Positions 39,079 to 56,835 of a stretch of DNA of 64,000 bases are shown here, in pieces; the first letter of the stretch is position 1, and each line of letters starts with the position of its first letter. This DNA is from Rebecca billardiae RCC1528. Its lineage: Eukaryota; Protista; Haptophyta. The notes beneath the pieces are model-generated. The model did no database searches. It saw nothing but the letters and a program-made list of their open reading frames with translations, and was not told the DNA's origin. The stretch covers positions 1,054,001-1,118,000 of the forward strand of contig OZ251241.1 in assembly GCA_965240325.2 (NCBI GenBank), read 5' to 3'. The position numbers and the translations under genes were made by a program.

Positions 39079-40710
39079 TCAGCCGTGGCCCGTACTGTAA
39101 TTTAGTACTACCGTACTGTTCGACGACGTGCGCTGCCGCTTGCTCATGCTTTCGCCGCCCTGCTCTGGTGGATGCGCATGAGCGAGGTCCACCGCCACGG
39201 CCTCCAACAGCGTGCACGCCTCGCGCGGATCCTCGTCCTTGAACGCACTCCAACGCGCCTGGCTCACGATCGCCTTCAAGTTGGCCTTCACCACAGCGCG
39301 CGCTGCCTCGCTGATCCGAGAGCCAGCTCCCGCCGCGCGCGCGTGCCGCAGGATGTCCAGGCAGTTGTCCGCGTCCAGCACGCCCAGCACCGCCTCCTCG
39401 CACCGACCCGCCACGAGGCCCAGCAGGTCAGCACCAGCGGGCGCAGAGGCCGCCTCGGCTGCGTCTGGCCCAGACGGCCGTGCGCCTTGCACGCTCCCAG
39501 CAGCACCCTCGCCGGGCGGCTGCAGCTTGCACGCCAGCCGAAGCAGCTCGAGCACCTCGCCCGGCTCGGTGGGCAGCTCGGCGCGACCGCCCGCGTGCAG
39601 CTGGCGCAGCAGCGCCTCGTGCGCCGCCGAGCTGAAGTCAGGGTCGGCGTCCACCTCGCGCCGGCTGCCTTCGGCCAGGCCGCCGCCCAGCTGCCGCGCA
39701 AAGTAGCTCGAGCCGTGGATCAGGAGCGCGCGGCTGCCGCCCAGCTGCGTGCCGTCCGCGCAGCGGAACACCACGTCGTGCCGCGCGGCGGACGGCTCGC
39801 TCACCAACGCCGACTGCGACAGCAGCTGCTCGTGCGACGCGCGCAGCTCGTCGACCTCCTGCGCCAGCCGGGCGCACTGCGCGCCCGCCGAGCGCAGCGC
39901 GCGCTCACAGCACTCGTCATCGCGCACGAGCTTCTTCGCAGCCTGCATGCAGGCGTCCCCGCTGTCGGCGCCGGCGTCGTGGTGCGCACGACGCAGCAGC
40001 GCGCCCACGGCCTGCTCGTTGCTCGCCACCTCCGCGCGGCCGGCGGCAGAGCGTGTGAGGATATCGATCGCACGCTGTGCCCGTGTTCGAGTGGTACAGT
40101 CGGGTGAGCACGCCGTTGAAGCGAGCGGAGGGATGGCGCCAGCCTCGATGATTGGCACGCGGAGCGAGTCTGACCTGGCGAGGTTGCCGAGAGCACCCGC
40201 TGCACGGCCCAGAGCCTGCGCATTGGTGCTGGACTTGAGCAGCGCGACGAGCGGCGAGATCGCGCCAGAGTCGGCGATCGGTGCGCGGAGCGAGTCTGAC
40301 ACGGCAAGGTTGGCGAGAGCACCCGCCGCTTCCTTGCACGTCCCTACAGCATCGGTTGTCTGCAGCATGGCCACGAGGGGCTGCACCGCGCCAGCCCGTG
40401 ACACGCAGCCAGGGACATGGGCGGCGATCCTCGCGAGAGCTGCCGCCGCAGCTGCCCGAACGCTTGCTTCGCCCGATGCTCCCAGCATGCGCACGAGGGC
40501 TGCGATCGAGCCGCCTCGCTCGATTGCATCGGGCTCTTCGAGCGTGCGGCCCGGCCTCGGAACGCAGAATGGCGTGAGCGCGCTCACGATGGCCTCGTCA
40601 TCACGTGGCGTCGCCTCGAGCGCGCGCACGAGGTCAGAGAGCGTGGCGGGGCCGATAGCCGCCGAGGCGAGTGACCCAGCGCGAACCACGGCCTTCTGGA
40701 CACACGTCAT
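39079..40710 (-). CDS. ARM-repeat/BTB-BACK protein, copy 1 (1 variable ARM module, extended C-terminus)
   Basis: ARM repeats (AGAIxPLVALL...AAGALGNLA), BTB (HDVVFRCADG..SSYF..GGLAE) and BACK-like (CEEAVL..DADNCLDIL). Start placed by alignment with the paralogs. Confidence 0.9.
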   Translation of the reverse strand: MTCVQKAVVRAGSLASAAIGPATLSDLVRALEATPRDDEAIVSALTPFCVPRPGRTLEEPDAIERGGSIAALVRMLGASGEASVRAAAAAALARIAAHVPGCVSRAGAVQPLVAMLQTTDAVGTCKEAAGALANLAVSDSLRAPIADSGAISPLVALLKSSTNAQALGRAAGALGNLARSDSLRVPIIEAGAIPPLASTACSPDCTTRTRAQRAIDILTRSAAGRAEVASNEQAVGALLRRAHHDAGADSGDACMQAAKKLVRDDECCERALRSAGAQCARLAQEVDELRASHEQLLSQSALVSEPSAARHDVVFRCADGTQLGGSRALLIHGSSYFARQLGGGLAEGSRREVDADPDFSSAAHEALLRQLHAGGRAELPTEPGEVLELLRLACKLQPPGEGAAGSVQGARPSGPDAAEAASAPAGADLLGLVAGRCEEAVLGVLDADNCLDILRHARAAGAGSRISEAARAVVKANLKAIVSQARWSAFKDEDPREACTLLEAVAVDLAHAHPPEQGGESMSKRQRTSSNSTVVLNYSTGHG

Positions 40711-41604
40711 GTGGCCGCCGCAGTGGGCAGCCGCTCGTCGCCGCTCGAACGACAAGCGCTCTCGATCGACGATGATCGAGGGCTGACGATGGGGCGCATA
40801 GCCAACCGTCGTCGTTGTCGCCTGGCGGCGGCGGCCGGCGGAGCCCTCCACCGCCCGGACTCTGGGTGAACGGTCACTCCACGGCCGGGGAAGCAGCGCG
40901 ATGGCGGGCTGGAGCTCTAGGACCGCAGCCGTCTGTCTCTCTGACCCGATGCATGGCGAAGCCTTCGCTGCCCAGCCCTTGCGCTGGCAGTAAGCCGGTA
41001 TCTAGCTAGTGAGTAGCTGATGCAGCCACCGGGACCGCGCGCAGGTGGTCAGTGCCCGTGCCGAATCAGGTCCGAACCAGCTGCAGGCCGAACGGCCGAA
41101 GCACTGGGTCGATGACAGGAACTGACGACGTTCACAGCAGGAGTGTGGCGGCAGTGGGCACCAAGCTACGTGAACAACTTTCTCCGGGATGTGCGTCGCG
41201 ATGGCGGAGCTCTCTCGACTCTGCGTCAGGTGTACTCTCCACACGCCCAGGGCCGGGCACCGCCCGTTCTCATCATCGGCCCTCGTGGCCTCGCGATCGT
41301 TCGACGACGAGGAAGCGGTCATCATCGATCGTCCTTCGTATTGAACGTACTACGCAACAATACTTGTTGCCGTCGCATCGAAAGCCTCATCATGCGCGAC
41401 GGGCGGATGAATCATCAAGCAACTTCGGTTGCACACCTACTAACTGTTATACTAGCAGGCTGGCCGTACGGACGTCAGGACCGTGCCGCTCGTCAATAGA
41501 CATCCGACGGTTCGGGACTGTCAGTCGGAGTCGGACACTCGATCGATCCGATGTAACTGATTACGAGGCTCTGCGCCGTCGCCAGTGATGCTGCGCTCTG
41601 ATGC

Positions 41605-43449
41605 TTAAGACGTGCGCTGCCGCTTGCTCGTGCTGTCGTCGCGCTGCTCTGGCGGCTGCACACGAGCGAGGTCCACCGCCACTGCCTGCATCAGCATGCA
41701 TGCCTCGAGCGAATCCTCGCGCATGAACGCACTCCAACGCTCATCACTCACGATTGCCTCCAAGTTGGCCTTCACCACAGCGCGCGCTGCCTCGCTGATC
41801 CGAGAGCCAGCTCCCGCCGCGCGCGCGTGCCGCAGGATGTCCAGGCAGTTGTCCGCGTCCAGCGCGCCCAGCACCGCCTCCTCGCACCGACCCGCCACAA
41901 GGCCCAGCAGGTCACCGCCAGCGCGCGCAGAGGCCGCCTCGGCTGCGTCTGGCCCAGACGGCCGTGCGCCTTGCGCGCTCCCAGCAGCAGCACCCTCGCC
42001 GGGCGGCTGCAGCTTGCACGCCAGCCGAAGCAGCTCGAGCACCTCGCCCGGCTCGGTGGGCAGCTCGGCGCGACCGCCCGCGTGCAGCTGGCGCAGCAGC
42101 GCCTCGTGCGCCGCCGAGCTGAAGTCAGGGTCGGCGTCCACCTCGCGCCGGCTGCCTTCGGCCAGGCCGCCGCCCAGCTGCCGCGCAAAGTAGCTCGAGC
42201 CGTGGATCAGGAGCGCGCGGCTGCCGCCCAGCTGCGTGCCGTCCGCGCAGCGGAACACCACGTCGTGCCGCGCGGCGGACGGCTCGCTCACCAACGCCGA
42301 CTGCGACAGCAGCTGCTCGTGCGACGCGCGCAGCTCGTCGACCTCCTGCGCCAGCCGGGCGCACTGCGCGCCCGCCGAGCCCAGCGCGCGCTCACAGCAC
42401 GCGTCGTCACGCACGAGCTTCTTCGCAGCCTGCATGCAGGCGTCCCCGTCGGCCGCGCCAGCGTCGTGGTGCGCACGACGCAGCAGCGCGCCCACGGCCT
42501 GCTCGTTGCTCGCCACCGCCACGCGGCCGGCGGCCGAGCTGGTGAGGGCATCGATCGCACGCTGTGCCCGTGTTCGAGTGGTACGGTCGGGTGAGCACGC
42601 CGCTGACGCGAGCGGAGGGATGGCGCCAGCCTCGACGATTGGCGCGCGGAGCGAGTCTGACTTGGCGAGGTTGTGGAGAGCACCCGCTGCACGGCCCAGA
42701 GCGTACCCATCGGTGCTGAACTTGAGCAGCGCGACGAGCGGTGTGATCGCGCCAGCCTCGGCGATCGGTGCCCGGAGCGAGTCTGACCTGGCGAGGTTGC
42801 CGAGAGCACCCGCTGCATTGCCCAGAGCGTGCGCATCGGTGCTGGACTTGAGCAGCGCGACGAGCGGTGCGATCGCACCAGCCTCGGCGATCGGTGCGCG
42901 GAGTGAGTCTGACCTGGCGAGGTTGCCGAGAGCACCCGCTGCATGGCCCAGAGCCTGCGCATTGGTGCTGGACTTGAGCAGCGCGACGAGAGGTGTGATC
43001 GCACCAGCGTCGGCGATCGGTGCGCTGAGCGAGTCAAAGGTGGCAAGGCTGCAGAGAGCAAGAGCTGCCTCCTTGTGCATCCCTTCAGCATCGGTTGTCT
43101 GCAGCATGGCCACGAGGGGCTGCACCGCGCCAGCCCATGACATGCAGCCAGGGACATGGGCGGCGATCCTCGCGAGAGCTGCCGCCGCAGCTGCCCGAAC
43201 GCTTGCTTCGCCCGATGCTCCCAGCATGCGCACGAGGGCTGCGATCGAGCCGCCTCGCTCGATGGCATCGGGCTCTTCGAGCTCGCGGCCCATCCTCGGA
43301 ACGCAGAACGGCGTGAGGGCGCTCACGATGGCCTCGTCATCACGTGGCGTCGCCTCGAGCGCGCGCACGAGGTCAGAGAGCGTGGCGGGGCCGATGGCCG
43401 CCGAGGCGAGCGACCCAGCGCGAGCCAGGGCCTCCTGGACAAATCCCAT
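41605..43449 (-). CDS. ARM-repeat/BTB-BACK protein, copy 2 (3 variable modules)
   Basis: Same architecture as copy 1; 614 aa from MGFVQEAL. Confidence 0.9.
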   Translation of the reverse strand: MGFVQEALARAGSLASAAIGPATLSDLVRALEATPRDDEAIVSALTPFCVPRMGRELEEPDAIERGGSIAALVRMLGASGEASVRAAAAAALARIAAHVPGCMSWAGAVQPLVAMLQTTDAEGMHKEAALALCSLATFDSLSAPIADAGAITPLVALLKSSTNAQALGHAAGALGNLARSDSLRAPIAEAGAIAPLVALLKSSTDAHALGNAAGALGNLARSDSLRAPIAEAGAITPLVALLKFSTDGYALGRAAGALHNLAKSDSLRAPIVEAGAIPPLASAACSPDRTTRTRAQRAIDALTSSAAGRVAVASNEQAVGALLRRAHHDAGAADGDACMQAAKKLVRDDACCERALGSAGAQCARLAQEVDELRASHEQLLSQSALVSEPSAARHDVVFRCADGTQLGGSRALLIHGSSYFARQLGGGLAEGSRREVDADPDFSSAAHEALLRQLHAGGRAELPTEPGEVLELLRLACKLQPPGEGAAAGSAQGARPSGPDAAEAASARAGGDLLGLVAGRCEEAVLGALDADNCLDILRHARAAGAGSRISEAARAVVKANLEAIVSDERWSAFMREDSLEACMLMQAVAVDLARVQPPEQRDDSTSKRQRTS

Positions 43450-44321
43450 GCCGCCGCCGCTGGGCAAGCCGCTCGTCGCCGCTCGATCGACAAGCGCTCG
43501 ATCGACGACCAAGCGTGAGCGCCGCAGCGAACCGTCGTCTTCACCGGAGCCCTCCCCGGCCCGGACTCTGGGCGAACTCGGAGAAGAACGGTCGCTCCAC
43601 GGCCGGGGAAGCAGCGCGATGGCGGGCCGGAGTTCTAGGACGGCAGCCCGTCTCTCTGATCCGATGCATGGCGAAGCCTTCGCCGCCCGGCCCTTGCGCT
43701 GGCAGTAAGCCGCTATCAAGCTACTGAGTAGCTGATGCAGCCACCGGGACCGCGCGCAGGTGGTCAGTGCCCGTGCCGAATCAGGTCCGAACCAGCTGCA
43801 GGCCGAACGGCCGAAGCACTGGGTCGATGACAGGAACTGACGACGTTCACAGCAGGAGTGTGGCGGCAGTGGGCACCAAGCTACGTGAACAACTTGCTCC
43901 GGGATGTGCGTCGCGATGGCGGAGCTCTCTCGACTCTGCGTCAGGTGTACTCTCCACACGCCCAGGGCCGGGCACCGCCCGTTCTCATCATCGGCCCTCG
44001 TGGCCTCGCAATCGTTCGACGACGAGGAAGCGGTCATGATCGATCGTCCTTAGTATTGAAACGTACTACGCAACAATACTGTACTTGTTGCCGTCGCATC
44101 GAAAGCCTCATCATGCGCGACGGGCGGATGAATCATCAAGCAACTTCGGTTGCACACTCCTACTAACTATATTGGCTAGGCTGGCCTACTGGCGGAGTCG
44201 GCGGACCGTGCCCGCTCGTCAATAGACATCGTTCGGGACTGTCAGTCGGAGTCGGACACTCGATCCGATGTAACTGATTACGAGGCTCTGCGCCGCCGCC
44301 AGTGATGCTGCGCTCTGATGC

Positions 44322-46544
44322 TTACGACGTGCGCAGCCGCTTGCTCGTGCTGTCGCCACGCTGCTGCTCTGACGACTGAGCACGAGCTAAGTCGGCCGCC
44401 ACGGCCTCCAACAGCGTGAACGCCTCGAGCGGATCCTCGCGCTTGAACGCACCCCAACGTTCATGGCTCACGATCGCCTCGAAGTTGGCCTTCACCACAC
44501 CGCGCGCTGCCTCGCTGATCCGAGAGCCAGCTCCCGCCGCGCGCGCGTGCCGCAGGATGTCCAGGCAGTTGTCCGCGTCCAGCACGCCCAGCACCGCCTC
44601 CTCGCACCGACCCGCCACGAGGCCCAGCAGGTCACCGCCAGCGCGCGCAGAGGCCGCCTCGGCTGCGTCTGGCCCAGACGGCCGTGCGCCTTGCGCGCTC
44701 CCAGCAGCACCCTCGCCGGGCGGCTGCAGCTTGCACGCCAGCCGAAGCAGCTCGAGCACCTCCCCCAGCTCGGTGGGCAGCTCGGCGCGACCGCCCGCGT
44801 GCAGCTGGCGCAGCAGCGCCTCGTGCGCCGCCGAGCTGAAGTCAGGGTCGGCGTCCACCTCGCGTCGGCTGCCCTCGGCCAGGCCGCCGCCCAGCTGCCG
44901 CGCAAAGTAGCTCGAGCCGTGGATCAGGAGCGCGCGGCTGCTGCCCAGCTGCGTGCCGTCCGCGCAGCGGAACACCACGTCGTGCCGCGCGGCGGACGGC
45001 TCGCTCACCAACGCCGACTGCGACAGCAGCTGCTCGTGCGACGCGCGCAGCTCGTCCACCTCCTGCGCCAGCCGGGCGCACTGCGCGCCCGCCGAGCCCA
45101 GCGCGCGCTCACAGCACGCGTCGTCACGCACGAGCTTCTTCGCAGCCTGCATGCAGGCGTCCCCGCTGTCTTGGTGCGCACGGCGCAGCAGAGCGCCCAC
45201 GGCCTGCTCGTTGCTCGCCACCGCCGCGCGGCCGGCGGCAGAGCGTGTGAGGGCATCGATCGCGTGCTGTGCCCGTGCTCGAGTGGTAGGGTCGGGTGAG
45301 CACGCCGCTGAAGCGAGCGGAGGGATGGCGCCAGCCTCGATGATTGGTGCGCAGAGCGAGTCTGACTCGGCGAGGTTGCAGAGAGCACCCGCTGCATCGC
45401 CCAGAGTATCCGTATCGGTGCTGGACGTGAGCAGCGCGACGAGCGGCGAGATCGCGCCAGCCTCGGCGATCTGTGCGCGGAGCGAGAGATCGCAAGCAAG
45501 GTTGCCGAGAGCACCCGCTGCCTCGCCCAGAGTATCCGTATCGGTGCTGGACGTGAGCAGCGCGACGAGCGGCGAGATCGCGCCAGCCTCGGCGATCTGT
45601 GCGCGGAGCGAGAGATCGCAAGCAAGGCTGCAGAGAGCACCCGCTGCCTCGCCCAGAGTATCCGTATCGGTGCTGGACGTGAGCAGCGCGACGAGCGGCG
45701 AGATCGCGCCAGAGTCGGCGATTGGCGCGCGGAGCGAGGGATGAAAAGCAAGGTTGCCGAGAGCACCCGCTGCATTGCACAGAGTGTTCGCATCGGTGCT
45801 GGACGCCAGCAGCGCGACGAGCGGCGAGACTGCGCCAGCCTCGGCGATCGGTGCGCGGAGCAAGGGATCGCCAGCAAGGCAGGAGAGAGCACCCGCTGCA
45901 TTGCAGAGAGCGTTCGCATCGGTGCTGGACTTGAGCAGCGCGACGAGCGGCGAGACTGCGCCAGCCTCGGCGATCGGTGCGCGGAGCAAGGGATCGCCAG
46001 CAAGGCAGGAGAGAGCACCCGCTGCATTGCAGAGAGCGTTCGCATTGGTGCTGGACGTGAGCAGCGCGACGAGCGGCGAGATCGCGCCAGCCTCGACGAT
46101 CGGTGCGCGGAGCGAGGGATCGCAAGCAAGGGTGAAGAGAGCACTCGCTGCACTGCCCAGAGCGTTCGCATCGGTGCTGGATGTCAGCAGCGCGACGAGC
46201 GGTGAGATCGCGCCAGCGTCGGCGATCGGTGCGCGGAGCGAGTCAAACGTGGCAAGGTTGCAGAGAGCAAGAGCTGCCGCCGCAGCTGCCTGAACGCTTG
46301 CTTCGCCCGATGCTCCCAGCATGCGCACGAGGGTTGCGATCGAGCCGCCTCGCTCGATTACATCGGGCTCTTCGATCGTGCGGCCCGGCCTCGGAACGCA
46401 GAATGGCGTGAGGGCGCTCACGATGGCCTCGTCATCACGTGGCGTCGCCTCGAGCGCGCGCACGAGGTCAGAGAGCGTGGCGGAGCCGATGACCGCCGAG
46501 GCGAGTGACCCAGCGCGAGCCAGGGCCTCCTGGACACACGTCAT
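44322..46544 (-). CDS. ARM-repeat/BTB-BACK protein, copy 3 (7 variable modules; 114-bp in-frame deletion)
   Basis: Same architecture; 740 aa from MTCVQEAL. Confidence 0.9.
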   Translation of the reverse strand: MTCVQEALARAGSLASAVIGSATLSDLVRALEATPRDDEAIVSALTPFCVPRPGRTIEEPDVIERGGSIATLVRMLGASGEASVQAAAAAALALCNLATFDSLRAPIADAGAISPLVALLTSSTDANALGSAASALFTLACDPSLRAPIVEAGAISPLVALLTSSTNANALCNAAGALSCLAGDPLLRAPIAEAGAVSPLVALLKSSTDANALCNAAGALSCLAGDPLLRAPIAEAGAVSPLVALLASSTDANTLCNAAGALGNLAFHPSLRAPIADSGAISPLVALLTSSTDTDTLGEAAGALCSLACDLSLRAQIAEAGAISPLVALLTSSTDTDTLGEAAGALGNLACDLSLRAQIAEAGAISPLVALLTSSTDTDTLGDAAGALCNLAESDSLCAPIIEAGAIPPLASAACSPDPTTRARAQHAIDALTRSAAGRAAVASNEQAVGALLRRAHQDSGDACMQAAKKLVRDDACCERALGSAGAQCARLAQEVDELRASHEQLLSQSALVSEPSAARHDVVFRCADGTQLGSSRALLIHGSSYFARQLGGGLAEGSRREVDADPDFSSAAHEALLRQLHAGGRAELPTELGEVLELLRLACKLQPPGEGAAGSAQGARPSGPDAAEAASARAGGDLLGLVAGRCEEAVLGVLDADNCLDILRHARAAGAGSRISEAARGVVKANFEAIVSHERWGAFKREDPLEAFTLLEAVAADLARAQSSEQQRGDSTSKRLRTS

Positions 46545-47351
46545 GTGGCCGCCGCAGTGGGCAGCCGCTCGTCGCCGCTCGAACGACAAGCGCTCTCGAT
46601 CGACGATGAGCGAGCGAGCGGTGAGCAAGCGCGCAGCCAACCGGCGTCGTTGGACTTGATTCCTTTGGTTGGAGCGGAGCCCTCCACCGCCCGGACTCTG
46701 GGTGAACGGTCGCTCCACGGCCGGGGAAGTAGCGATGGCCGATGGCGGACTAGAGTTCTAGGACGACCGCCTGTCTCTCTGACCCGATGCATGGCGAAGC
46801 TTTCGCCGCCCGGCCCTTCCGCTGGCAGTATGCCACTACCTAGACAGTGAGTAGCTGATGCAGCCGCCGGGACCGCGCGCAGTTGGTCAGTGCCCGAGCC
46901 GAATCAAGGTCCGAACCAGCTGCAGGCTGAACGGCCGAAGCACTGGGTCGATGACAGGAACTGACGACGTTCACAGCTGGAGTGTGGCGGCAGCGGGCAC
47001 CAAGCTGCGTGAACAACTTTCTCCAGGATGTGCCTGGTGATGGCGGAGCACTCTCGAATCCGCGTCAGGTGTACTGTCAGCACGCCCAGGGCCGGGCACC
47101 GACGATCGTCAATTTTCATCACCCCTCGTCCTCGATCGTTCGACGACGCGCCACGCGCACGCGATCATCGTCCTCAGTGAAACGTAATCAGTATTTATTG
47201 TCGTCGCATCGAAAGCCTCATCATGCGACGAGATGAATCATCAAGCCAGTACGAGTGCGCACCTAAAATCAGAATCGTCGGACATCATCGATCTGACTGA
47301 TGACAGATGCTGAGGCTCCGCGCCGCCGCCAGTGATGCTGCGCGCTGATGC

Positions 47352-49433
47352 TTACGACGTGCGCTGCCGCTTGCTCGTGCTGTCGTCGCGCTGCTCTGAC
47401 GACTGAGCACGAATGACGTCCGCCGCCACGGCCTGCATTAGCATGCATGCCTCGAGCGGATCCTCGCGCATGAACGCACTCCAACGCTCATGGCTCACGA
47501 TCGTCTCGAAGTTGGCCTTCACCACACCGCGCGCTGCCTCGCTGATCCGAGAGCCAGCTCCCGCCGCGCGCGCGTGCCGCAGGATGTCCAGGCAGTTGTC
47601 CGCGTCCAGCACGCCCAGCACCGCCTCCTCGCACCGACCCGCCACGAGGCCCAGCAGGTCACCGCCAGCGCGCGCAGAGGCCGCCTCGGCTGCGTCTGGT
47701 CCAGACGGCCGTGCGCCTTGCGCGCTCCCAGCAGCACCCTCGCCGGGCGGCTGCAGCTTGCTCGCCAGCCGAAGCAGCTCGAGCACCTCGCCCGGCTCGG
47801 TGGGCAGCTCGGCGCGACCGCCCGCGTGCAGCTGGCGCAGCAGCGCCTCGTGCGCCGCCGAGCTGAAGTCCGGGTCGGCGTCCACCTCGCGCCGGCTGCC
47901 CTCGGCCAGGCCGCCGCCCAGCTGCCGCGCAAAGTAGCTCGAGCCGTGGATCAGGAGCGCGCGGCTGCCGCCCAGCTGCGTGCCGTCCGCGCAGCGGAAC
48001 ACCACGTCGTGCCGCGCGGCGGACGGCTCGCTCACCAACGCCGACTGCGACAGCAGCTGCTCGTGCGACGCGCGCAGCTCGTCGACCTCCTGCGCCAGCC
48101 GGGCGCACTGCGCGCCCGCCGAGCCCAGCGCGCGCTCACAGCACGCGTCGTCACGCACGAGCTTCTTCGCAGCCTGCATGCAGGCGTCCCCGCTGTCTTG
48201 ATGCGCACGGCGCAGCAGCGCGCCCACGGCCTGCTCGTTGCTCGCCACCGCCGCGCGGCCGGCAGCCGAGCTGGTGAGGGCATCGATCGCACGCTGTGCC
48301 CGTGCTCGAGTGGTAGGGTCGGGTGAGCACGCCGCTGAAGCGAGCGGAGGGATGGCGCCAGCCTCGACGATTGGCGCGCAGAGCGAGTCTGACCTGGCGA
48401 GGGTGCGGAGAGCACCCGCTGCATTGCCCAGAGCGTACGCATCGGTGCTGGACTTGAGCAGCGCGACGAGCGGTGTAATCGCGCCAGCCTCGGCGATTGG
48501 TGCGCGGAGCGGGGGATCGGCAGCAAGGTTGCCGAGCGCACCCGCTGCATTGCCCAGAGCCTTCGCATTGGTGCTGGACGTGAGCAGCGCGACGAGCGGC
48601 GAGATCGCGCCAGCTTCGGCGATCGGTGCGCGGAGCGAGAGATCGCAAGCAAGGTTGCAGAGAGCACCCGCTGCCTCGCCCAGAGTATCCGTATCGGTGC
48701 TGGACGTCAGCAGCGCGACGAGCGGCGAGATCGCGCCAGAGTCGGCGATTGGCGCGCGGAGCGAGGGATCCAAAGCAAGGTTGCCGAGAGCACCCGCTGC
48801 CTCGCCCAGAGTGATCGCATCGGTGCTGGACGTCAGCAGCGCGACGAGCGGCGAGATCGCGCCAGCCTCGGCGATCGGTGCGCGGAGCGAGAGATCGCAA
48901 GCAAGGTTGCCGAGAGCACCCGCTGCATTGCCCAGAGTGCCCGTATCGCTGCTGGACTTGAGCAGCGCGACGAGCGGTGCAATCGCGCCAGCCTCGGCGA
49001 TCGGTGCGCAGAGCGGGAGATCGGAAGCGAGATTGGCGACAGCACGCGCCGCTGCCCTGTGCGTCCATTCAGCATCGGTTGTCTGCAGCATGGCCACGAG
49101 GGGCTGCACCGCGCCAGCCTGTGACACGCAGCCAGGGATATGGGACGCAATGCCCCCAAGAGCTGCCGCCGCAGCTGCCCGAACGCTTGCTTCGCGTGAT
49201 GCTCCCAGCATGCGCACAAGCGCTGCCACCGAGCCGCCTTGCTCGATGGCATCGGGCTCTTCGAGTTTGCCGCCCGTCATCGAAACGCAGAATGGCGTGA
49301 GGGCGCTCACGATGGCCTCGTCATCACGTGGCGTCGCCTCGAGCGCGCGCACGAGGTCAGAGAGCGTGGTGGGGCCGATGACCGCCGAGGCGAGTGCCCC
49401 AGCGCGAGCCACGGCCTCCTGGACCAATTCCAT
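47352..49433 (-). CDS. ARM-repeat/BTB-BACK protein, copy 4 (5 variable modules)
   Basis: Same architecture; 693 aa from MELVQEAV. Confidence 0.9.
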   Translation of the reverse strand: MELVQEAVARAGALASAVIGPTTLSDLVRALEATPRDDEAIVSALTPFCVSMTGGKLEEPDAIEQGGSVAALVRMLGASREASVRAAAAAALGGIASHIPGCVSQAGAVQPLVAMLQTTDAEWTHRAAARAVANLASDLPLCAPIAEAGAIAPLVALLKSSSDTGTLGNAAGALGNLACDLSLRAPIAEAGAISPLVALLTSSTDAITLGEAAGALGNLALDPSLRAPIADSGAISPLVALLTSSTDTDTLGEAAGALCNLACDLSLRAPIAEAGAISPLVALLTSSTNAKALGNAAGALGNLAADPPLRAPIAEAGAITPLVALLKSSTDAYALGNAAGALRTLARSDSLCAPIVEAGAIPPLASAACSPDPTTRARAQRAIDALTSSAAGRAAVASNEQAVGALLRRAHQDSGDACMQAAKKLVRDDACCERALGSAGAQCARLAQEVDELRASHEQLLSQSALVSEPSAARHDVVFRCADGTQLGGSRALLIHGSSYFARQLGGGLAEGSRREVDADPDFSSAAHEALLRQLHAGGRAELPTEPGEVLELLRLASKLQPPGEGAAGSAQGARPSGPDAAEAASARAGGDLLGLVAGRCEEAVLGVLDADNCLDILRHARAAGAGSRISEAARGVVKANFETIVSHERWSAFMREDPLEACMLMQAVAADVIRAQSSEQRDDSTSKRQRTS

Positions 49434-50252
49434 GCCGCTGCCGCTGGGCAGCCGCTCGTCGCCGCTCGATCGACAAGCGAAAGCGCTGCTCGATCGACGA
49501 TGTCCGAGCGCTGACAGTCCGCTGAGCAGCGCGCAGCCAACCGTCCTCATCGTCGCCCGGAGCCCTCCACCCGGACTCTGGGTGAACGGTCGCTCCACGG
49601 CCGGAGAAGCAGCGCGATGGCGGGCTGGAGTTCTAGGACGACCGCCCGTCTCTCTGACCCGATGCATGGCGAAGCTTTCGCCGCCCGGCCCTTCCGCTGG
49701 CAGTATGCCACTGCCTAGACAGTGAGTAGCTGATGCAGCTGCCAGTAGCGCGCGCAGTTGGTCAGTGCCCGTGCCGAATCAAGGTCCGAACCAGCTGCAG
49801 GCCGAACGGCCGAAGCACTGGGTCGATGACATGAACTGACGACGTTCACAGCGGGAGTGTGGCGGTCGTGGGCACCAAGCTACGTGCACAACTTTCTCCA
49901 GGATGTGCCTGGTGATGGCGGAGCACTCTCGACTCTGCGTCAGGTGTACTGTCAGCACGCCCAGGGCCGGGCACCGCCCGTTCTGACGATCATCATCAAT
50001 TTAGTCATCACCGCCCCTCGGCCTCGTCCTCGATCGTTCGACGACGCGGTCATCGTCCTCAGTGAAACGTAATCAGTATTTATTGTCGTCGCATCGAAAG
50101 CCTCATCATGCGACGAGATGAATCATCAAGCCAGTACGAGTGCGCACCTAAAATCAGAATCGTCGGACATCATCGATCTGACTGATGACAGATGCTATGC
50201 TGAGGCCGTCCGCGCCGCCGCCAGTGATGCTGCGCAATCTGCGCTCTGGTGC

Positions 50253-52220
50253 TTAAGACGTGCGCTGCCGCTTGCTCGTGCTGTCGTCGCGCTGCTCTGG
50301 CGGCTGCACACGAGCGAGGTCCACCGCCACTGCCTGCATCAGCATGCATGCCTCGAGCGAATCCTCGCGCATGAACGCACTCCAACGCTCATCACTCACG
50401 ATCGCCTCCAAGTTGGCCTTCACCACAGCGCGCGCTGCCTCGCTGATCCGAGAGCCAGCTCCCGCCGCGCGCGCGTGCCGCAGGATGTCCAGGCAGTTGT
50501 CCGCGTCCAGCACGCCCAGCACCGCCTCCTCGCACCGACCCGCCACAAGGCCCAGCAGGTCACCGCCAGCGCGCGCAGAGGCCGCCTCGGCTGCGTCTGG
50601 TCCAGACGGCCGTGCGCCTTGCGCGCTCCCAGCAGCACCCTCGCCGGGCGGCTGCAGCTTGCACGCCAGCCGAAGCAGCTCGAGCACCTCGCCCGGCTCG
50701 GTGGGCAGCTCGGCGCGACCGCCCGCGTGCAGCTGGCGCAGCAGCGCCTCGTGCGCCGCCGAGCTGAAGTCCGGGTCGGCGTCCACCTCGCGCCGGCTGC
50801 CCTCGGCCAGGCCGCCGCCCAGCTGCCGCGCAAAGTAGCTCGAGCCGTGGATCAGGAGCGCGCGGCTGCCGCCCAGCTGCGTGCCGTCCGCGCAGCGGAA
50901 CACCACGTCGTGCCGCGCGGCGGACGGCTCGCTCACCAACGCCGACTGCGACAGCAGCTGCTCGTGCGACGCGCGCAGCTCGTCCACCTCCTGCGCCAGC
51001 CGGGCGCACTGCGCGCCCGCCGAGCCCAGCGCGCGCTCACAGCACGCGTCGTCACGCACGAGCTTCTTCGCAGCCTGCATGCAGGCGTCCACGCCGGCCG
51101 CGCCAGCGTCGTGGTGCGCACGACGCAGCAGCGCGCCCACGGCCTGCTCGTTGCTCGCCATTGCCGCGCGGCCGGCGGCCAAGCTGGTGAGGGCATCGAT
51201 CGCACGCTGTGCCCACTTTCGAGTGTCCAGGTCGGGTGAGCACGCTGCTGAAGCGAGCGGAGGGATGGCGCCAGCCTCGACGATTGGTCCGCACAGCGAG
51301 TCTGACCTGGCGAGGTTGCAGAGAGCAGCCGCTGCCTCGCCCAGAGTATCCGTATCGGTGCTGGACGTGAGCAGCGCGACGAGCGGTGAGATCGCGCCAG
51401 CGTCGGCGATCGGTGCGCAGAGCGGGGGATCACCAGCAAGGTTGAAGAGAGCACTAGCTGCACTGCCCAGAGTGTTCGCATCGGTGCTGGACTTCAGCAG
51501 CGCGACGAGAGGTGTGATCGCACCCGCCTCGGCGATCGGTGTGCGGAGTGAGTCTGACCTGGCGAGGTTGCGGAGAGCACACGCTGCATTGCCCAGAGTG
51601 ATCGCATTGGTGCTGGACGTGAGCAGCGCGATGAGCGGCGAGATCGCGCCAGCCTCGGCGATCGGGGCACGGAGCGAGAGATCGCAAGCAAGGGTGCCGA
51701 GAGCAGCCGCTGCACTGCCCAGAGCGGTCGCATCGGTGCTGGACTTCAGCAGCGCGACGAGCGGTGTGATCGCGCCAGCGTCGGCGATCGGTGCGCGGAG
51801 CGAGTCAAAGGTGGCAAGGCTGCAGAGAGCAAGAGCTGCCGCCTTGTGCATCCCTTCAGCATCGGTTGTCTGCAGCATGGCCACGAGGGGCTGCACCGCG
51901 CCAGCCCGTGACATGCAGCCAGGGACATGGGCGGCGATCCTCGCGAGAGCTGCCGCCGCAGCTGCCCGAACGCTTGCTTCGCGTGATGCTCCCAGCATGC
52001 GCACGAGGGTTGCGACCGAGCCGCCTCGCTCGATGGCATCGGGCTCTTCGATCGTGCGGCCCGGCCTCGGAACGCAGAATGGCGTGAGCGCGCTCACGAT
52101 GGCCTCGTCATCACGTGGCGTCGCCTCGAGCGCGCGCACGAGGTCAGAGAGCGTGGCGGGGCCGATAGCCGCCGAGGCGAGTGACCCAGCGCGAGCCAGG
52201 GCCTCCTGGACAAATCCCAT
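50253..52220 (-). CDS. ARM-repeat/BTB-BACK protein, copy 5 (4 variable modules)
   Basis: Same architecture; 655 aa from MGFVQEAL. Confidence 0.9.
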   Translation of the reverse strand: MGFVQEALARAGSLASAAIGPATLSDLVRALEATPRDDEAIVSALTPFCVPRPGRTIEEPDAIERGGSVATLVRMLGASREASVRAAAAAALARIAAHVPGCMSRAGAVQPLVAMLQTTDAEGMHKAAALALCSLATFDSLRAPIADAGAITPLVALLKSSTDATALGSAAAALGTLACDLSLRAPIAEAGAISPLIALLTSSTNAITLGNAACALRNLARSDSLRTPIAEAGAITPLVALLKSSTDANTLGSAASALFNLAGDPPLCAPIADAGAISPLVALLTSSTDTDTLGEAAAALCNLARSDSLCGPIVEAGAIPPLASAACSPDLDTRKWAQRAIDALTSLAAGRAAMASNEQAVGALLRRAHHDAGAAGVDACMQAAKKLVRDDACCERALGSAGAQCARLAQEVDELRASHEQLLSQSALVSEPSAARHDVVFRCADGTQLGGSRALLIHGSSYFARQLGGGLAEGSRREVDADPDFSSAAHEALLRQLHAGGRAELPTEPGEVLELLRLACKLQPPGEGAAGSAQGARPSGPDAAEAASARAGGDLLGLVAGRCEEAVLGVLDADNCLDILRHARAAGAGSRISEAARAVVKANLEAIVSDERWSAFMREDSLEACMLMQAVAVDLARVQPPEQRDDSTSKRQRTS

Positions 52221-53069
52221 GCCGCCGCCGCAGTGGGCAGCCGCTCGTCGCCGCTCGATCGACAAGCGCTCTCGTATCGACGATGAGCGAGTGCTGAGCA
52301 GCGCGCAGCCAACCGTCGTCGTGGCTGCGCGCGCCCGGAGCCCTCCGCCCGGACCGGCTGGGCGAACAGAACGGTCGCTCCACGGCCGGAGAAGCAGCGC
52401 GATGGCGGGCTGGAGCTCTAGGACGGCAGCCGTCTGTCTCTCTGACCCGATGCATGGCGAAGCCTTCGCTGCCCGGCCCTTGCGCTGGCAGTAAGCCGGT
52501 ATCTAGCTAGTGAGTAGCTGATGTAGCCACCGGGACCGCGCGCAGGTGGTCAGTGCCCGTGCCGAATCAGGTCCGAACCAGCTGCAGGCCGAACGGCCGA
52601 AGCACTGGGTCGATGACAGGAACTGAGGACGTTCACAGCAGGAGTGTGGCGGCAGTGGGCACCAAGCTACGTGAACAACTTTCTCCGGGATGTGCGTCGC
52701 GATGGTGGAGCACTCTCGACTCTGCGTCAGGTGCACTCCCCACTCACGCCCAGGGCCGGGCACCGCCCGTTCTCATCGTCATCGCCCCTCGTGGCCTCGC
52801 GATCGTGCGACGACGAGGAAGCGGTCATCATCGATCGTCCTTATTGAAACGGAACTACTACGCAATATTTGCTGCCGTCGCATCCGGAAAGCCTCATCAT
52901 GCGCGACGGGATGAATCATCAAGCAGCTTCGGTTGCACACCTACTATTGTAATATAGGCTGGCTACTCCGGGACTACGGGACTATCGAGTGATCGTCGGA
53001 CACTCGATCCGATGACTGATTACGAGGCTCTGCGCCGCCGCCAGTGTCAGTGATGCTGCGCTCTGATGC

Positions 53070-54662
53070 TTACGACGTGCGCAGCCGCTTGCTCGTGCTG
53101 TCATCGCCCTGCTCTGACGACTGAGCACGAACGACGTCCGCCGCCACTGCCTCCAACAGCGTGCACGCCTCGAGCGGATCCTTGTTCTTGAACGCACTCC
53201 AAAGCTCAGACTGGCTCACGATCGCCTCGAAGTTGGCCTTCACCACACCGCGCGCTGCCTCGCTGATCCGAGAGCCAGCTCCCGCCGCGCGCGCGTGCCG
53301 CAGGATGTCCAGGCAGTTGTCCGCGTCCAGCACGCCCAGCACCGCCTCCTCGCACCGACCCGCCACGAGGCCCAGCAGGTCACCACCAGCGCGCGCAGAG
53401 GCCGCCTCGGCTGCGTCTGGCCCAGAAAGCAGTGCGCCTTGCGCGCTCCCAGCAGCACCCTCGCCGGGCGGCTGCAGCTTGCACGCCAGCTGAAGCAGCT
53501 CGAGCACCTCGCCCAGCTCGGTGGGCAGCTCGGCGCGCCCGCCCGCGTGCAGCTGGCGCAGCAGCGCCTCGTGCGCCGCCGAGCTGAAGTCCGGGTCGGC
53601 GTCCACCTCGCGCCGGCTGCCCTCGGCCAGGCCGCCGCCCAGCTGCCGCGCAAAGTAGCTCGAGCCGTGGATCAGGAGCGCGCGGCTGCCGCCCAGCTGC
53701 GTGCCGTCCGCGCAGCGGAACACCACGTCATGCCGCGCGGCGGACGGCTCGCTCACCAACGCCGACTGCGACAGCAGCTGCTCGTGCGACGCGCGCAGCT
53801 CGTCCACCTCCTGCGCCAGCCGGGCGCACTGCGCGCCCGCCGAGCGCAGCGCGCGCTCACAGCACGCATCGTCACGCACGAGCTTCTTCGCAGCCTGCAT
53901 GCAGGCGTCCCCGCCGGCCGTGCCAGCGTCGTGGTGCGCACGACGCAGCAGCGCGCCCACTGCCTGCTCGTTGCTCGCCACCGCTGCGCGGCCGACGGCT
54001 GAGCTGGTAAGGGCATCGATCGCGTGCTGTGCCCGTGCTCGAGTGGTAGGGTCGGGCGAGCACATCGCTGAAGCAAGCGGCGGGATGGCGCCAGCCTCGA
54101 TGATTGGCACGCGGAGCGAGTATGACCTGGCAAGGTTGCGGAGAGCACTTGCTGCACCACACAGAGCGCTTGCATCGGTGCTGGAGTTGAGCAGCGCGAC
54201 GAGCGGTGTGATCGCGCCAGCCTCGGCGATCGGAGCGCGGAGCGGGGGATCGTAAGCAAGGTAGAAGAGAGCAAGAGCAGCCTCCTTGCACGTCCCTTCA
54301 GCATCGGTTGTCTGCAGCATGGCCACGAGGGGCTGCACCGCGCCAGCCCGTGACACGCAGCCAGGAACATGGGCCGCGATCCTCGCAAGAGCTGCCGCCG
54401 CAGCTGTCCGAACGCTTGCTTCGCGTGATGCTCCCAGCATGCGCACAAGCGTTGCGACCGAGCCGCCTCGCTCGACTGCATTGGGCTTCTTGAGTTTGCT
54501 GCCCGGCATCGGAACGCAGAACGGCGTGAGCGCGCGCACGATGGCATCATTATCACGTGGCGTCGTCTCGAGCGCGCGCACGAGGTCAGAGAGCGTGGCG
54601 GGGCCGATGACTGCCGAGGTGAGTGAGTCGACGCGAGCTTCGGCCTCCTGGATAAATGCCAT
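53070..54662 (-). CDS. ARM-repeat/BTB-BACK protein, copy 6 (1 variable module; unique upstream region)
   Basis: Same architecture; 530 aa from MAFIQEAE. Divergent from the SHPRH-like gene. Confidence 0.9.
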   Translation of the reverse strand: MAFIQEAEARVDSLTSAVIGPATLSDLVRALETTPRDNDAIVRALTPFCVPMPGSKLKKPNAVERGGSVATLVRMLGASREASVRTAAAAALARIAAHVPGCVSRAGAVQPLVAMLQTTDAEGTCKEAALALFYLAYDPPLRAPIAEAGAITPLVALLNSSTDASALCGAASALRNLARSYSLRVPIIEAGAIPPLASAMCSPDPTTRARAQHAIDALTSSAVGRAAVASNEQAVGALLRRAHHDAGTAGGDACMQAAKKLVRDDACCERALRSAGAQCARLAQEVDELRASHEQLLSQSALVSEPSAARHDVVFRCADGTQLGGSRALLIHGSSYFARQLGGGLAEGSRREVDADPDFSSAAHEALLRQLHAGGRAELPTELGEVLELLQLACKLQPPGEGAAGSAQGALLSGPDAAEAASARAGGDLLGLVAGRCEEAVLGVLDADNCLDILRHARAAGAGSRISEAARGVVKANFEAIVSQSELWSAFKNKDPLEACTLLEAVAADVVRAQSSEQGDDSTSKRLRTS

Positions 54663-54843
54663 GTGCTGATGTGGCCGTCGTAGGACAAGCCGTCGTCGTC
54701 GGTGGGCAGCTGGTCGTTTGGAGTTGTTCTGCAATCCGGTCCAACCGTCATCGTCGTGTTGCCCACCCGGACTGGGTCCGGGTGGTGGAGCGCGGTGTCG
54801 CGGATCTCCGCCTCCGTGTCGTCGCGCCCGCGCGTGCACGGCC

Positions 54844-56775
54844 ATGGGCAGGCGGAAGGCCGCTCCTCAGCGGCAGCTGCACGAGGCGTCCCACGAGCCC
54901 GCGAGCCTGATGGAGCCGCCGCCGCTGCCCGACTGGGCGCAGCGCGAGCGCAGCGCGCGCGAGGACCTCCCGAGCGCGCGCGCCAAGCGGCAGCGCGCGC
55001 CGCCCGCGCGCCGGCTGTCGTCGACGTCGCTCGACGCGGCCGCACGCGCGGACGCGACGCTCCTGTGCACCCGGGACGTGCACGCGCCCCCGCCCAGCGG
55101 CCCACTCCGCTTCGTCGTCCTTCGCGCCGAGGCTGGCGGGCACTCGCTGTCCCTGCAGTCGACGCTTGACGACGACGGCTCCGGCGCGGGCGACGCGCCG
55201 AGCGTGCCCGTGGAGCAGGCGCTCTCGCTCGAGGCCGAGGCCGCCGAGGCGCTCGTCTACCTCAGCGAGCGCGGCCTCGTCCACCTCGAGCCCGCGCCGC
55301 ACGCCGCGCACGGCGGCGAGCCCGAGGGTGGCACGAGCCAGGACGCAGGCCGATCAGCAAACGGCGCCGCTGCCGTGTCCGTTCTGCTGCTCGGCGGCCT
55401 GTTCCACCAGTGCGCCGACGCGAGCGCGGCCCCGCCGGCGCGCAACCACGTGCGGCTCGCCGTGGTCAAGCTGATGCACGCGCTCCTCGGCGACGCCCTC
55501 GCGCGCGCGGCGCCGAGTGCCGCGGCCGCATGCGCGCGCGCGCAGCCTGAGAGCGGTGCCGCTGGGAGCGACGACCCTGCCGCCCTCAGCACGGACGCGG
55601 CGGCGGCGGCGGCGGCCGCCGCGCTCATGGCGGACCTCGAGGAGCACACGGCCCGGCGGCACGCGCTCACGGGCGCCGACGCCGGCGGCGCGCGCGACGC
55701 GGCGCACTCCGCACGCGCCCCTCAGGCCTCGGCCGCGGCAGAGGGGGCGGCCGCGGGTCCGGCCGGCTCGCCCGGGGCGGCTCCCGCCGCGGGGATGGCG
55801 CCGGGCGCGGGCTTCGTGGCCGTGGGCTCTCCGCCCGCACTGCTCCCCACGCTCCGCCCGTACCAGCTGCGCGCGCTCAGCTGGATGGTGAGCCGCGAGG
55901 CGCAGCCCGGCGGCGCGCCGTCCGGGGCGCGCGAGCTGGCAGCTGCGTCGGGTCGGGCTTCGGACGCGGCTGCGGTGGGCGACGATGGCGAAGGTGCGCG
56001 CGTGGGTGGAGGCGGCGGGTCGGAGGAGCGCGCGGGTGGCGCGGGCGAGGAGGCTTACGAGCCGACGCCGCCCGCCGAGCTCAGCGTCACGCTCCACGCT
56101 GCTGACGGTGCATGCCTCATCTACTGCCCAGCCAACGGCTGCCTGCAGCGGCCGGCAGCGGCGCCGCGCGAGCGACGCGCGCGCGCGCCGCGCGGCTGTG
56201 CGGCGCCGAGCGCCGCGCTGCCGGCCGGCGGCGGGCTCTCCGTCAGCGCCGCGCCCGACCCTGGCGGCGCGCTCTCGCGCGCGCTGCGCGGCGGCATCCT
56301 CGCTGACGAGATGGGCCTGGGTAAAACGGTTGAGGTGATCTCGCTGATACTGGCGCGGCCGATGTCGACGGCCGCGCCGGCGGCCGCGGAGGGCGGGACG
56401 GCGTCCGCGCCGGCGGCGGCGGGTCCGGGTGTGTCGGTTGGGTCGGCGCGCGCGAGGTGCGCTGCGTCGGCGGCGCCTGCGGGCGAGGGCCCCGCCGAGC
56501 CGCCGCGCAAGCGGCCGCGCGCCTCTCCTGGCGGCGCCAGGGCGGGCGGCCGCGCGCCGCCCGTCCGCGCGGCCGCGGATGGGACGGAGGAGGAGGAGGC
56601 GCCGACAAGGGCCGGCGCCGCGGGGTTCGCCGCCGACGTGTGCGTGATCTGCTGCGAGCGCTCGGCCGGCGCGCGCGCGGGCGCGGGCGCGGAGGGCTGG
56701 GTCGCGTGCGACACGTGCGGCGGCTGGGTGCACATGGCGTGCGCGGGGCTCGACGAGCCCGTGGCTTCAGCGGCG

Positions 56776-56835
<60 letters not shown>

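Follow-up and report, generated by a model that had tools for sequence, protein, structure and literature searches.

Why do a handful of codons take many states within tandem protein modules whose other positions change far less? The question is raised by a cluster of armadillo (ARM)-BTB genes in a 64,000-nucleotide stretch of the Rebecca billardiae RCC1528 genome (contig OZ251241.1, positions 1,054,001 to 1,118,000), referred to here as the window and cited in its own coordinates. The window lies on contig 24, in a eukaryotic genome of 72 Mb, 41 contigs, and 62% to 80% GC. Six tandem minus-strand paralogs, g0 to g5, span 39079-54845, each with one to seven core modules of 42 residues (126 bp). 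The genes are part of a family that has at least 45 tail matches in the genome. An original prediction, made from the sequence alone, had described hypervariable codons on one face of the third ARM helix and had ascribed them to strong diversifying selection. We confirm the observation in part, and the interpretation is supported. With a probability of about 70%, the pattern reflects diversifying selection combined with module shuffling in a substrate-receptor family of germline ARM-BTB paralogs.

Variable positions and the predicted binding face

Codon states were tabulated in the 20 core modules of g1 to g5 and in a wider set of 51 unique modules from 14 close genes on contig 24. Within the first set, position 25 takes 10 codons encoding 10 residues, position 29 takes 7 codons, position 35 takes 6, position 36 takes 4, and position 39 takes 9 codons encoding 8 residues; the lists of states originally drawn up for positions 25, 29, 35, 36, and 39-40 are reproduced exactly. 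Residue counts in the wider set reach 13 at positions 25 and 39, 10 at 29, 8 at 35, 6 at 36, and 5 at 32, the last being a hypervariable position that the earlier list had missed. Positions 24, 28, and 41 are moderately variable, as are 12 and 19, while no residue change at all occurs at positions 1, 5, 10, 13, 14, 16, 17, 18, 21, and 30. Between modules, amino acid identity is 0.25 at the six helix-face sites (25, 29, 32, 35, 36, and 39) versus 0.82 elsewhere. The combinations are diverse as well: 44 distinct six-residue signatures occur in 55 modules, and therefore a small code is not being reused, unlike in TALE repeats. As positional orthologs in 11 paralogs, the N-cap modules vary at 26-28, 31-32, 35, 36, and 39-41.

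Some of the initial description was too strong. The framework DNA, taken to be almost invariant, is 83% to 85% identical between modules and has at least 48 synonymous states. Third codon positions, described as mostly fixed, are fixed at position 29 (T) and at positions 35 and 36 (C) but mixed at position 25 (C 26, G 17, T 7, A 1) and position 39 (G 24, C 18, T 9).

Positions 12 and 19 define two module subtypes, Ser12 with Thr19 and Thr or Ala12 with Lys19, which are intermixed within arrays in a way that is consistent with old variants reshuffled by recombination. Although omega exceeds 1 at both positions, they were dropped as candidate binding-face sites because they look like these two old subtypes.

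To place the variable sites on the fold, the g3 protein was modelled with AlphaFold2 on a 26-sequence family alignment, and sites were mapped by secondary structure, helical period, and sequence register to solved complexes of designed armadillo repeat proteins (dArmRPs). The predicted local distance difference test score (pLDDT) is 96 to 98 across the array, and each module forms three helices, with helix 3 at module positions 24 to 37. Confinement of the variable sites to helix 3, as first proposed, thus holds for positions 25, 29, 35, and 36, whereas positions 39-41 lie in the following loop, since the modelled helix ends at 37. A helical wheel puts positions 25, 29, 32, and 36 within 40 degrees of one another, with 28 and 35 flanking them and invariant Ala and Leu residues opposite. 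Foldseek ranks consensus-designed ARM proteins highest, some of them in complexes with (KR)5 peptides, and places importin-alpha, beta-catenin, and Vac8 next. Alignment to dArmRPs with phmmer (E-values down to 5e-35) is gap-free in helix 3 from position 27, so that module position p equals dArmRP position p+1: 29 corresponds to Glu30, 32 to Trp33, 35 to position 36, 36 to Asn37, and 39 to Ser40 of the designed repeat.

In designed repeats, Glu30 and Trp33 are exposed peptide-binding residues, and positions 27, 32, 34, 36, and 38 make inter-repeat contacts (PMC4756613). The binding surface is concave and takes one dipeptide per repeat, a conserved ladder of Asn residues holds the peptide backbone (PMC6838082), and the pockets are built by helix 3 of neighbouring repeats (PMC11228518). 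Because the variable stripe aligns in register with Glu30, Trp33, and Asn37, it is the predicted ligand face. The sites align with concave-surface positions rather than with the buried core or the convex face, and the helical wheel and the dArmRP register together bear out the idea that they share one helix face and match the surface of designed armadillo binders. Position 35 would sit at the edge of the stripe, at a spot that in designed proteins packs against the next repeat. The modules thus share with dArmRPs and importin-alpha a length of 42 residues, the same fold, and variable sites that coincide with pocket-forming helix-3 positions. They differ in that the Trp position is Gly, Ser, or Leu, and in that only 34 of 51 modules retain the Asn of the ladder (position 36 is otherwise Ser, Asp, Thr, Cys, or Arg).

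Selection on the variable sites and competing explanations

Selection was assessed at the six helix-face sites. In all-pair comparisons, the uncorrected NG86 proportions of nonsynonymous and synonymous differences (pN and pS) are 0.481 and 0.242 at the six sites, compared with 0.056 and 0.142 in the framework (dN/dS of about 0.4). A tree-free nearest-neighbour test used 25 independent pairs picked using only the other codons; six-site pN in these pairs is 0.288, versus a pooled pS of 0.079 (Fisher test, 5e-20) and a pS of 0.154 at the same codons (p = 0.009). A codon model with fixed dS gave omega estimates of 8 at positions 25 and 29, 6 at 39, 4 at 32, 3 at 35, and 2.5 at 36, with values no higher than 0.3 at most packing positions. 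A mixture that lets omega exceed 1 fits better than one restricted to omega of 1 or less (twice the log-likelihood difference, 218), with posteriors above 0.99 at 25, 29, 32, 35, 36, and 39. The three approaches concur that dN/dS exceeds 1 at the six sites, with values of about 2 to 8 against 0.4 in the framework, in agreement with the strong diversifying selection first proposed.

Relaxed constraint alone would read these data differently: the helix-3 surface would drift (omega near 1) over a conserved packing core, and apparent omega values above 1 would be produced by recombination, by multiple hits, and by the small size of the synonymous sample. Evolution is indeed loose across the family, with a paralog background of pS 0.12 to 0.16 and pN/pS of 0.46 to 0.63 in the tail and head. 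Several results also weigh against diversifying selection on a peptide-binding face. A test with site-specific dS is significant at positions 23, 26, 29, 32, and 35; at 25 and 39 it is not, and synonymous and nonsynonymous rates there are both high. When the synonymous differences of the six codons themselves serve as the reference, the excess is only about twofold. In the youngest duplicates (6 or fewer nucleotide differences), changes in the framework are as common as those on the binding face. Module recombination breaks the assumption of a single tree and can give false positives in site models. Finally, the equivalent of Trp33 (position 32) is Gly in 29 of the 51 modules, Ser in 10, Leu in 8, Cys in 2, and Ala in 2, and never Trp; with the Trp pocket residue of importins and designed binders replaced, the ligand may not be a basic peptide, or may not be a peptide at all.

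Relaxed constraint is nevertheless unlikely to be the whole explanation. The tree-free independent pairs keep pN above pS against both references, and uncorrected proportions understate the larger of the two values. The six sites occupy one helix face with omega estimates of 3 to 8, and both the N-cap orthologs and independent subfamilies vary at the same sites.

A much less probable account places the cause in the DNA, with local mutational hot spots whose sequence context speeds change at the variable codons, so that selection for new residues would not be needed. It draws on synonymous differences that are about twice as frequent at the six codons as in the framework (0.154 versus 0.067, p = 0.016) and on the high synonymous rate (alpha) estimated by fixed effects likelihood at positions 25 and 39. 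Extra synonymous steps are, however, expected from path averaging at multiply hit codons, and positions 29, 35, and 36 lack any synonymous state yet have 9, 7, and 5 replacements. The 30 highly variable nucleotide columns (consensus A in 9, G in 11, T in 6, and C in 4) have neither a base nor a motif in common, and the variable sites track the helical period of the protein, not a feature of the DNA.

Programmed diversification, either by adenine mutagenesis like that of diversity-generating retroelements (DGRs) or by somatic cassette conversion from silent donors, as with the variable lymphocyte receptors (VLRs) of lampreys or bacterial vlsE, is extremely improbable. Hypervariable codons in a conserved scaffold are a feature shared with DGRs, and AAY is the commonest codon at positions 25, 29, and 36; many donor-like modules are also present in four clusters on the same chromosome. 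The host is a eukaryote, however, adenine specificity is absent (the consensus is a base other than A in 21 of the 30 highly variable columns, and 37% of the diversity lies in G columns), and neither a template repeat nor an adjacent reverse transcriptase was found. All 55 RVT_1 matches in the genome fall outside the window, many of them in large or multi-copy open reading frames, as expected of retroelements. The contig 24 match nearest the family (650857-651315) is separated from the window by about 400 kb and from the closest cluster by 235 kb. A genome search found no free template module among the module-like DNA matches long enough to judge, every one of which adjoins the BTB tail of an ARM-BTB gene. 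DGR-like adenine mutagenesis was rejected on these three grounds (9 of 30 columns A, no free template, no reverse transcriptase in the window), in line with its earlier dismissal. All six genes are complete, so that none resembles a silent cassette. Recent duplicates show framework and synonymous changes as often as binding-face changes, and these balanced changes in module pairs 6 or fewer bases apart fit slow germline change under selection, with no burst of targeted mutation. In public reads, 6% of the words sampled occur in just two runs, each made up of short, partly divergent contigs from relatives or metagenomes, and no RNA run contains the locus.

The other component of the favoured explanation, shuffling of modules alongside diversifying selection, is visible in the arrays themselves. 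Modules only two bases apart are found in different genes (for example, module 5 of g2 and module 3 of g3), mean module DNA identity between genes (0.831) is almost as high as within them (0.848), and array lengths differ among paralogs. Selection plus conversion is, as had been argued at the outset, a simpler explanation than a DGR.

The BTB-BACK tail and a possible receptor family

Each gene ends in a BTB-BACK tail. Single proteins score 18.6 to 20.2 bits against the Pfam BTB model, just under its cut-off of 20.5, but BTB is detected in 24 of 26 family members, with a best E-value of 3.3e-21. A profile of 15 tails matches the BTB and 3-box/BACK regions of KLHL22, KBTBD2, SPOP, KLHL3, and KLHL11 (E-values 8e-14 to 9e-8; up to 1e-10 for the first three and up to 3e-9 when KLHL3 is included). 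A separate model of the tail (pLDDT 80) has Foldseek matches to SPOP (E = 1.4e-6, probability 1.00), KBTBD2, KLHL22, and KLHL11, several of them in Cullin-3 complexes, and the fold alignment runs through the BACK helices of SPOP, KLHL11, and KBTBD2. The phi-x-E motif of BTB domains contacts Cullin-3 in BTB-Kelch/CUL3 structures. At the corresponding place, residues L80-A81-E82 of the tail align with L-K-E of KLHL22, and E82 does not vary among 15 family members. The genome has cullin genes, and the tail most likely docks a Cullin-3-type ligase, judging from its sequence and predicted fold. The BTB core is separated from the BACK helices by a Gly/Ala/Pro-rich, low-confidence insert at window positions 47700-47790 (g3 residues ~640-668) and at the equivalent place in paralogs; the KLHL and SPOP templates are without this insert.

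The closest known architecture is that of ARMC5 in animals and ARIA-type proteins in plants, which likewise have ARM repeats on the N-terminal side and BTB on the C-terminal side. ARMC5 forms an E3 ligase for RPB1 and SREBF with CUL3 and RBX1 and binds its substrates via the ARM domain (PMC9226510, PMC9462479). The Pfam model PF24768 (ARM_ARMC5; cut-off 79.9) scores 136.7 bits in g2, 118.3 in g3, and 88.3 in g4, compared with 75.1 in g1 and 44.6 in g5, and its matches are broken up into several stretches, a result that any regular ARM array would be expected to give. The likeness to ARMC5 is therefore one of architecture and of a PF24768 score made up of several generic ARM stretches. ARMC5 is a single-copy gene with divergent repeats, whereas the family described here comprises dozens of paralogs with near-identical hypervariable modules.

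In the mechanism that we propose, the ARM solenoid would most likely be the substrate receptor, holding an extended peptide in a groove lined by helix-3 residues of successive modules. Positive diversifying selection would keep point substitutions at the groove-lining positions 25, 29, 32, 35, and 36 and at loop position 39, while purifying selection would hold the packing residues. Unequal crossing-over and gene conversion between 126-bp modules could both alter module number (1 to 17) and shift modules within and between genes. The outcome would be many adaptors built on one scaffold with differing binding surfaces. Peptide binding, Cullin-3 docking, and target degradation are what we infer for these proteins; that the targets are viral or other fast-evolving proteins is a guess. 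A more ambitious version, which we regard as speculative and rather doubtful, is a natural combinatorial library of peptide readers encoded in the germline. In it, each module would use its helix-3 residues to recognise about two residues of an extended peptide, and shuffling among more than 15 clustered genes would give new Cullin-3 adaptor specificities that mark fast-evolving foreign proteins, such as those of viruses, for degradation. If true, this would amount to an innate immune repertoire based on E3 ligases and a natural counterpart of the modular binders that protein engineers seek to build.

Near-identical repeats with a few hypervariable surface positions are characteristic of recognition repertoires such as the NLRs of fungi, the receptors of brown algae, and the VLRs of lampreys. 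The ARM-BTB genes bear this signature on an armadillo solenoid joined to a predicted Cullin-3-type adaptor tail. In the NLR-like proteins of fungi, diversifying selection acts on four interaction-surface positions of each repeat, and exchange of repeats takes place both inside a paralog and from one paralog to another (PMC4986451, PMC1805685, PMC2873952). The HNWD/HET-E WD40, ANK, and TPR proteins of Podospora share with the ARM-BTB family near-identical tandem repeats of about 42 residues in variable number, a few positively selected positions per repeat that map to the interaction surface, and repeat exchange both inside and among clustered paralogs. However, the repeats here are armadillo rather than WD, ANK, or TPR, the host is an alga, and the partner is BTB-BACK in place of a NACHT or NB-ARC switch with a death effector. 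Module amino acid identity within genes (0.63 to 0.83) also lies mostly below the 85% criterion applied to the fungal repeats. No NOD domain was found in Pfam scans of the family proteins, and the family is not a fungal-type NLR, though its evolutionary mode is alike.

A second parallel is offered by the F-box and MATH-BTB proteins of nematodes and plants, which are adaptively evolving adaptor families (Thomas 2006, PMC1524861, as cited in PMC8120010). Features in common with the ARM-BTB family are tandem expansion of adaptors, a ligase-docking domain under purifying selection, a substrate-binding domain under positive selection, and a proposed anti-pathogen role. The ARM-BTB family is without a MATH or F-box domain, and in place of a single MATH or FTH domain its receptor is a repeat solenoid whose modules are shuffled. 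The literature searched contains no account of fast-evolving hypervariable repeats in ARM-BTB proteins.

If diversifying selection on a shuffled receptor surface is the correct reading, it would point to degradation-based recognition in haptophyte-like algae, whose antiviral defences are poorly known. It would also provide dozens of natural variants at the pocket positions that designers of modular binders randomise, and it would mean that AAY-rich hypervariable codons can arise by ordinary selection, with no retroelement.

Gene anatomy and the family across the genome

Tandem Repeats Finder places the 126-bp arrays at 42609-43060, 45314-46269, 48341-49049, and 51254-51831, all in minus-strand open reading frames (g1 to g4). 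The six genes (Table 1) share one order of parts, consisting of a helical head, an N-cap-type ARM module, core modules, a C-cap module, a coiled coil, and the BTB-BACK tail. E-values for Arm (Pfam PF00514) range from 1.9e-23 to 9.3e-60 in g1 to g5. The genes have a conserved Met right before a QEA(L/V/E)AR motif, and for this reason the upstream extensions of the reading frames are probably non-coding; the true start of g1 is likely the Met ahead of QEALARAG. The tail of g0 was matched at C24:1093124-1094158 with 90% identity.

Table 1 ARM-BTB genes of the window and features of their core modules
Feature	Position in window	Strand	Details
g0, sixth ARM-BTB paralog	39079..40851	-	N-cap-type module, 1 core module (40165-40290), BTB-BACK tail; from open reading frame list
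g1, ARM-BTB gene	41605..44037	-	3 core modules (42652-43029)
g2, ARM-BTB gene	44322..46718	-	7 core modules (45357-46238); Arm E = 9e-60
g3, ARM-BTB gene	47352..49667	-	5 core modules (48384-49013); BTB-BACK tail 47355-48146; structure-modelled gene
g4, ARM-BTB gene	50253..52265	-	4 core modules (51297-51800)
g5, ARM-BTB gene	53070..54845	-	1 core module (54117-54242)
Example array, seven 126-bp modules of g2	45357..46238	-	Hypervariable codons at module positions 25, 29, 32, 35, 36 (helix 3) and 39 (loop)
Hypervariable codons within each 126-bp module		minus-strand reading	Module bases 73-75, 85-87, 94-96, 103-108, 115-117

Genome-wide, the tail query has 51 matches, 15 of them close (at least 81% identity). 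On contig 24 the close tails form four clusters (886-895 kb, 1006-1011 kb, the window, and 1196-1202 kb), and contig 17 has a single further site. The number of core modules ranges from 1 to 17. More distant subfamilies have modules of 41 residues on contigs 1 and 8 and of 42 residues on contig 12. The closest relative outside the genome, P0001 from a JGI metagenome, has the same architecture with 42% identity. The subfamilies on contigs 1, 8, and 12 and P0001 all repeat the variability pattern at matching helix-3 sites. The 41-residue modules (contigs 1 and 8 and P0001) are one residue shorter ahead of helix 3 and even more uniform, and one gene on contig 1 has 20 of them.

The tail of the paralog at C24:1200485-1202829 lies in two reading frames (tail matches 1201691-1202029 and 1202122-1202829), and this gene is probably a frameshifted pseudogene; four more distant members each have one in-frame TGA. 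On the plus strand of the window, a 2524-codon open frame at 54718-62292 includes a 78-bp tandem duplication (59095-59253); such frames arise easily at its GC content of 74% to 81%. The C-termini of g0 to g5 (for example, window 47355-47380) end in a basic K-R-Q-R or K-R-K-R sequence that resembles a nuclear localisation signal and is common to all close and most distant family members examined. The longest array among the close paralogs, the 17 core modules at C24:888819-892682 on the minus strand, contains five-module blocks (630 bp) that recur about three times almost unchanged, a higher-order repeat that points to very recent amplification.

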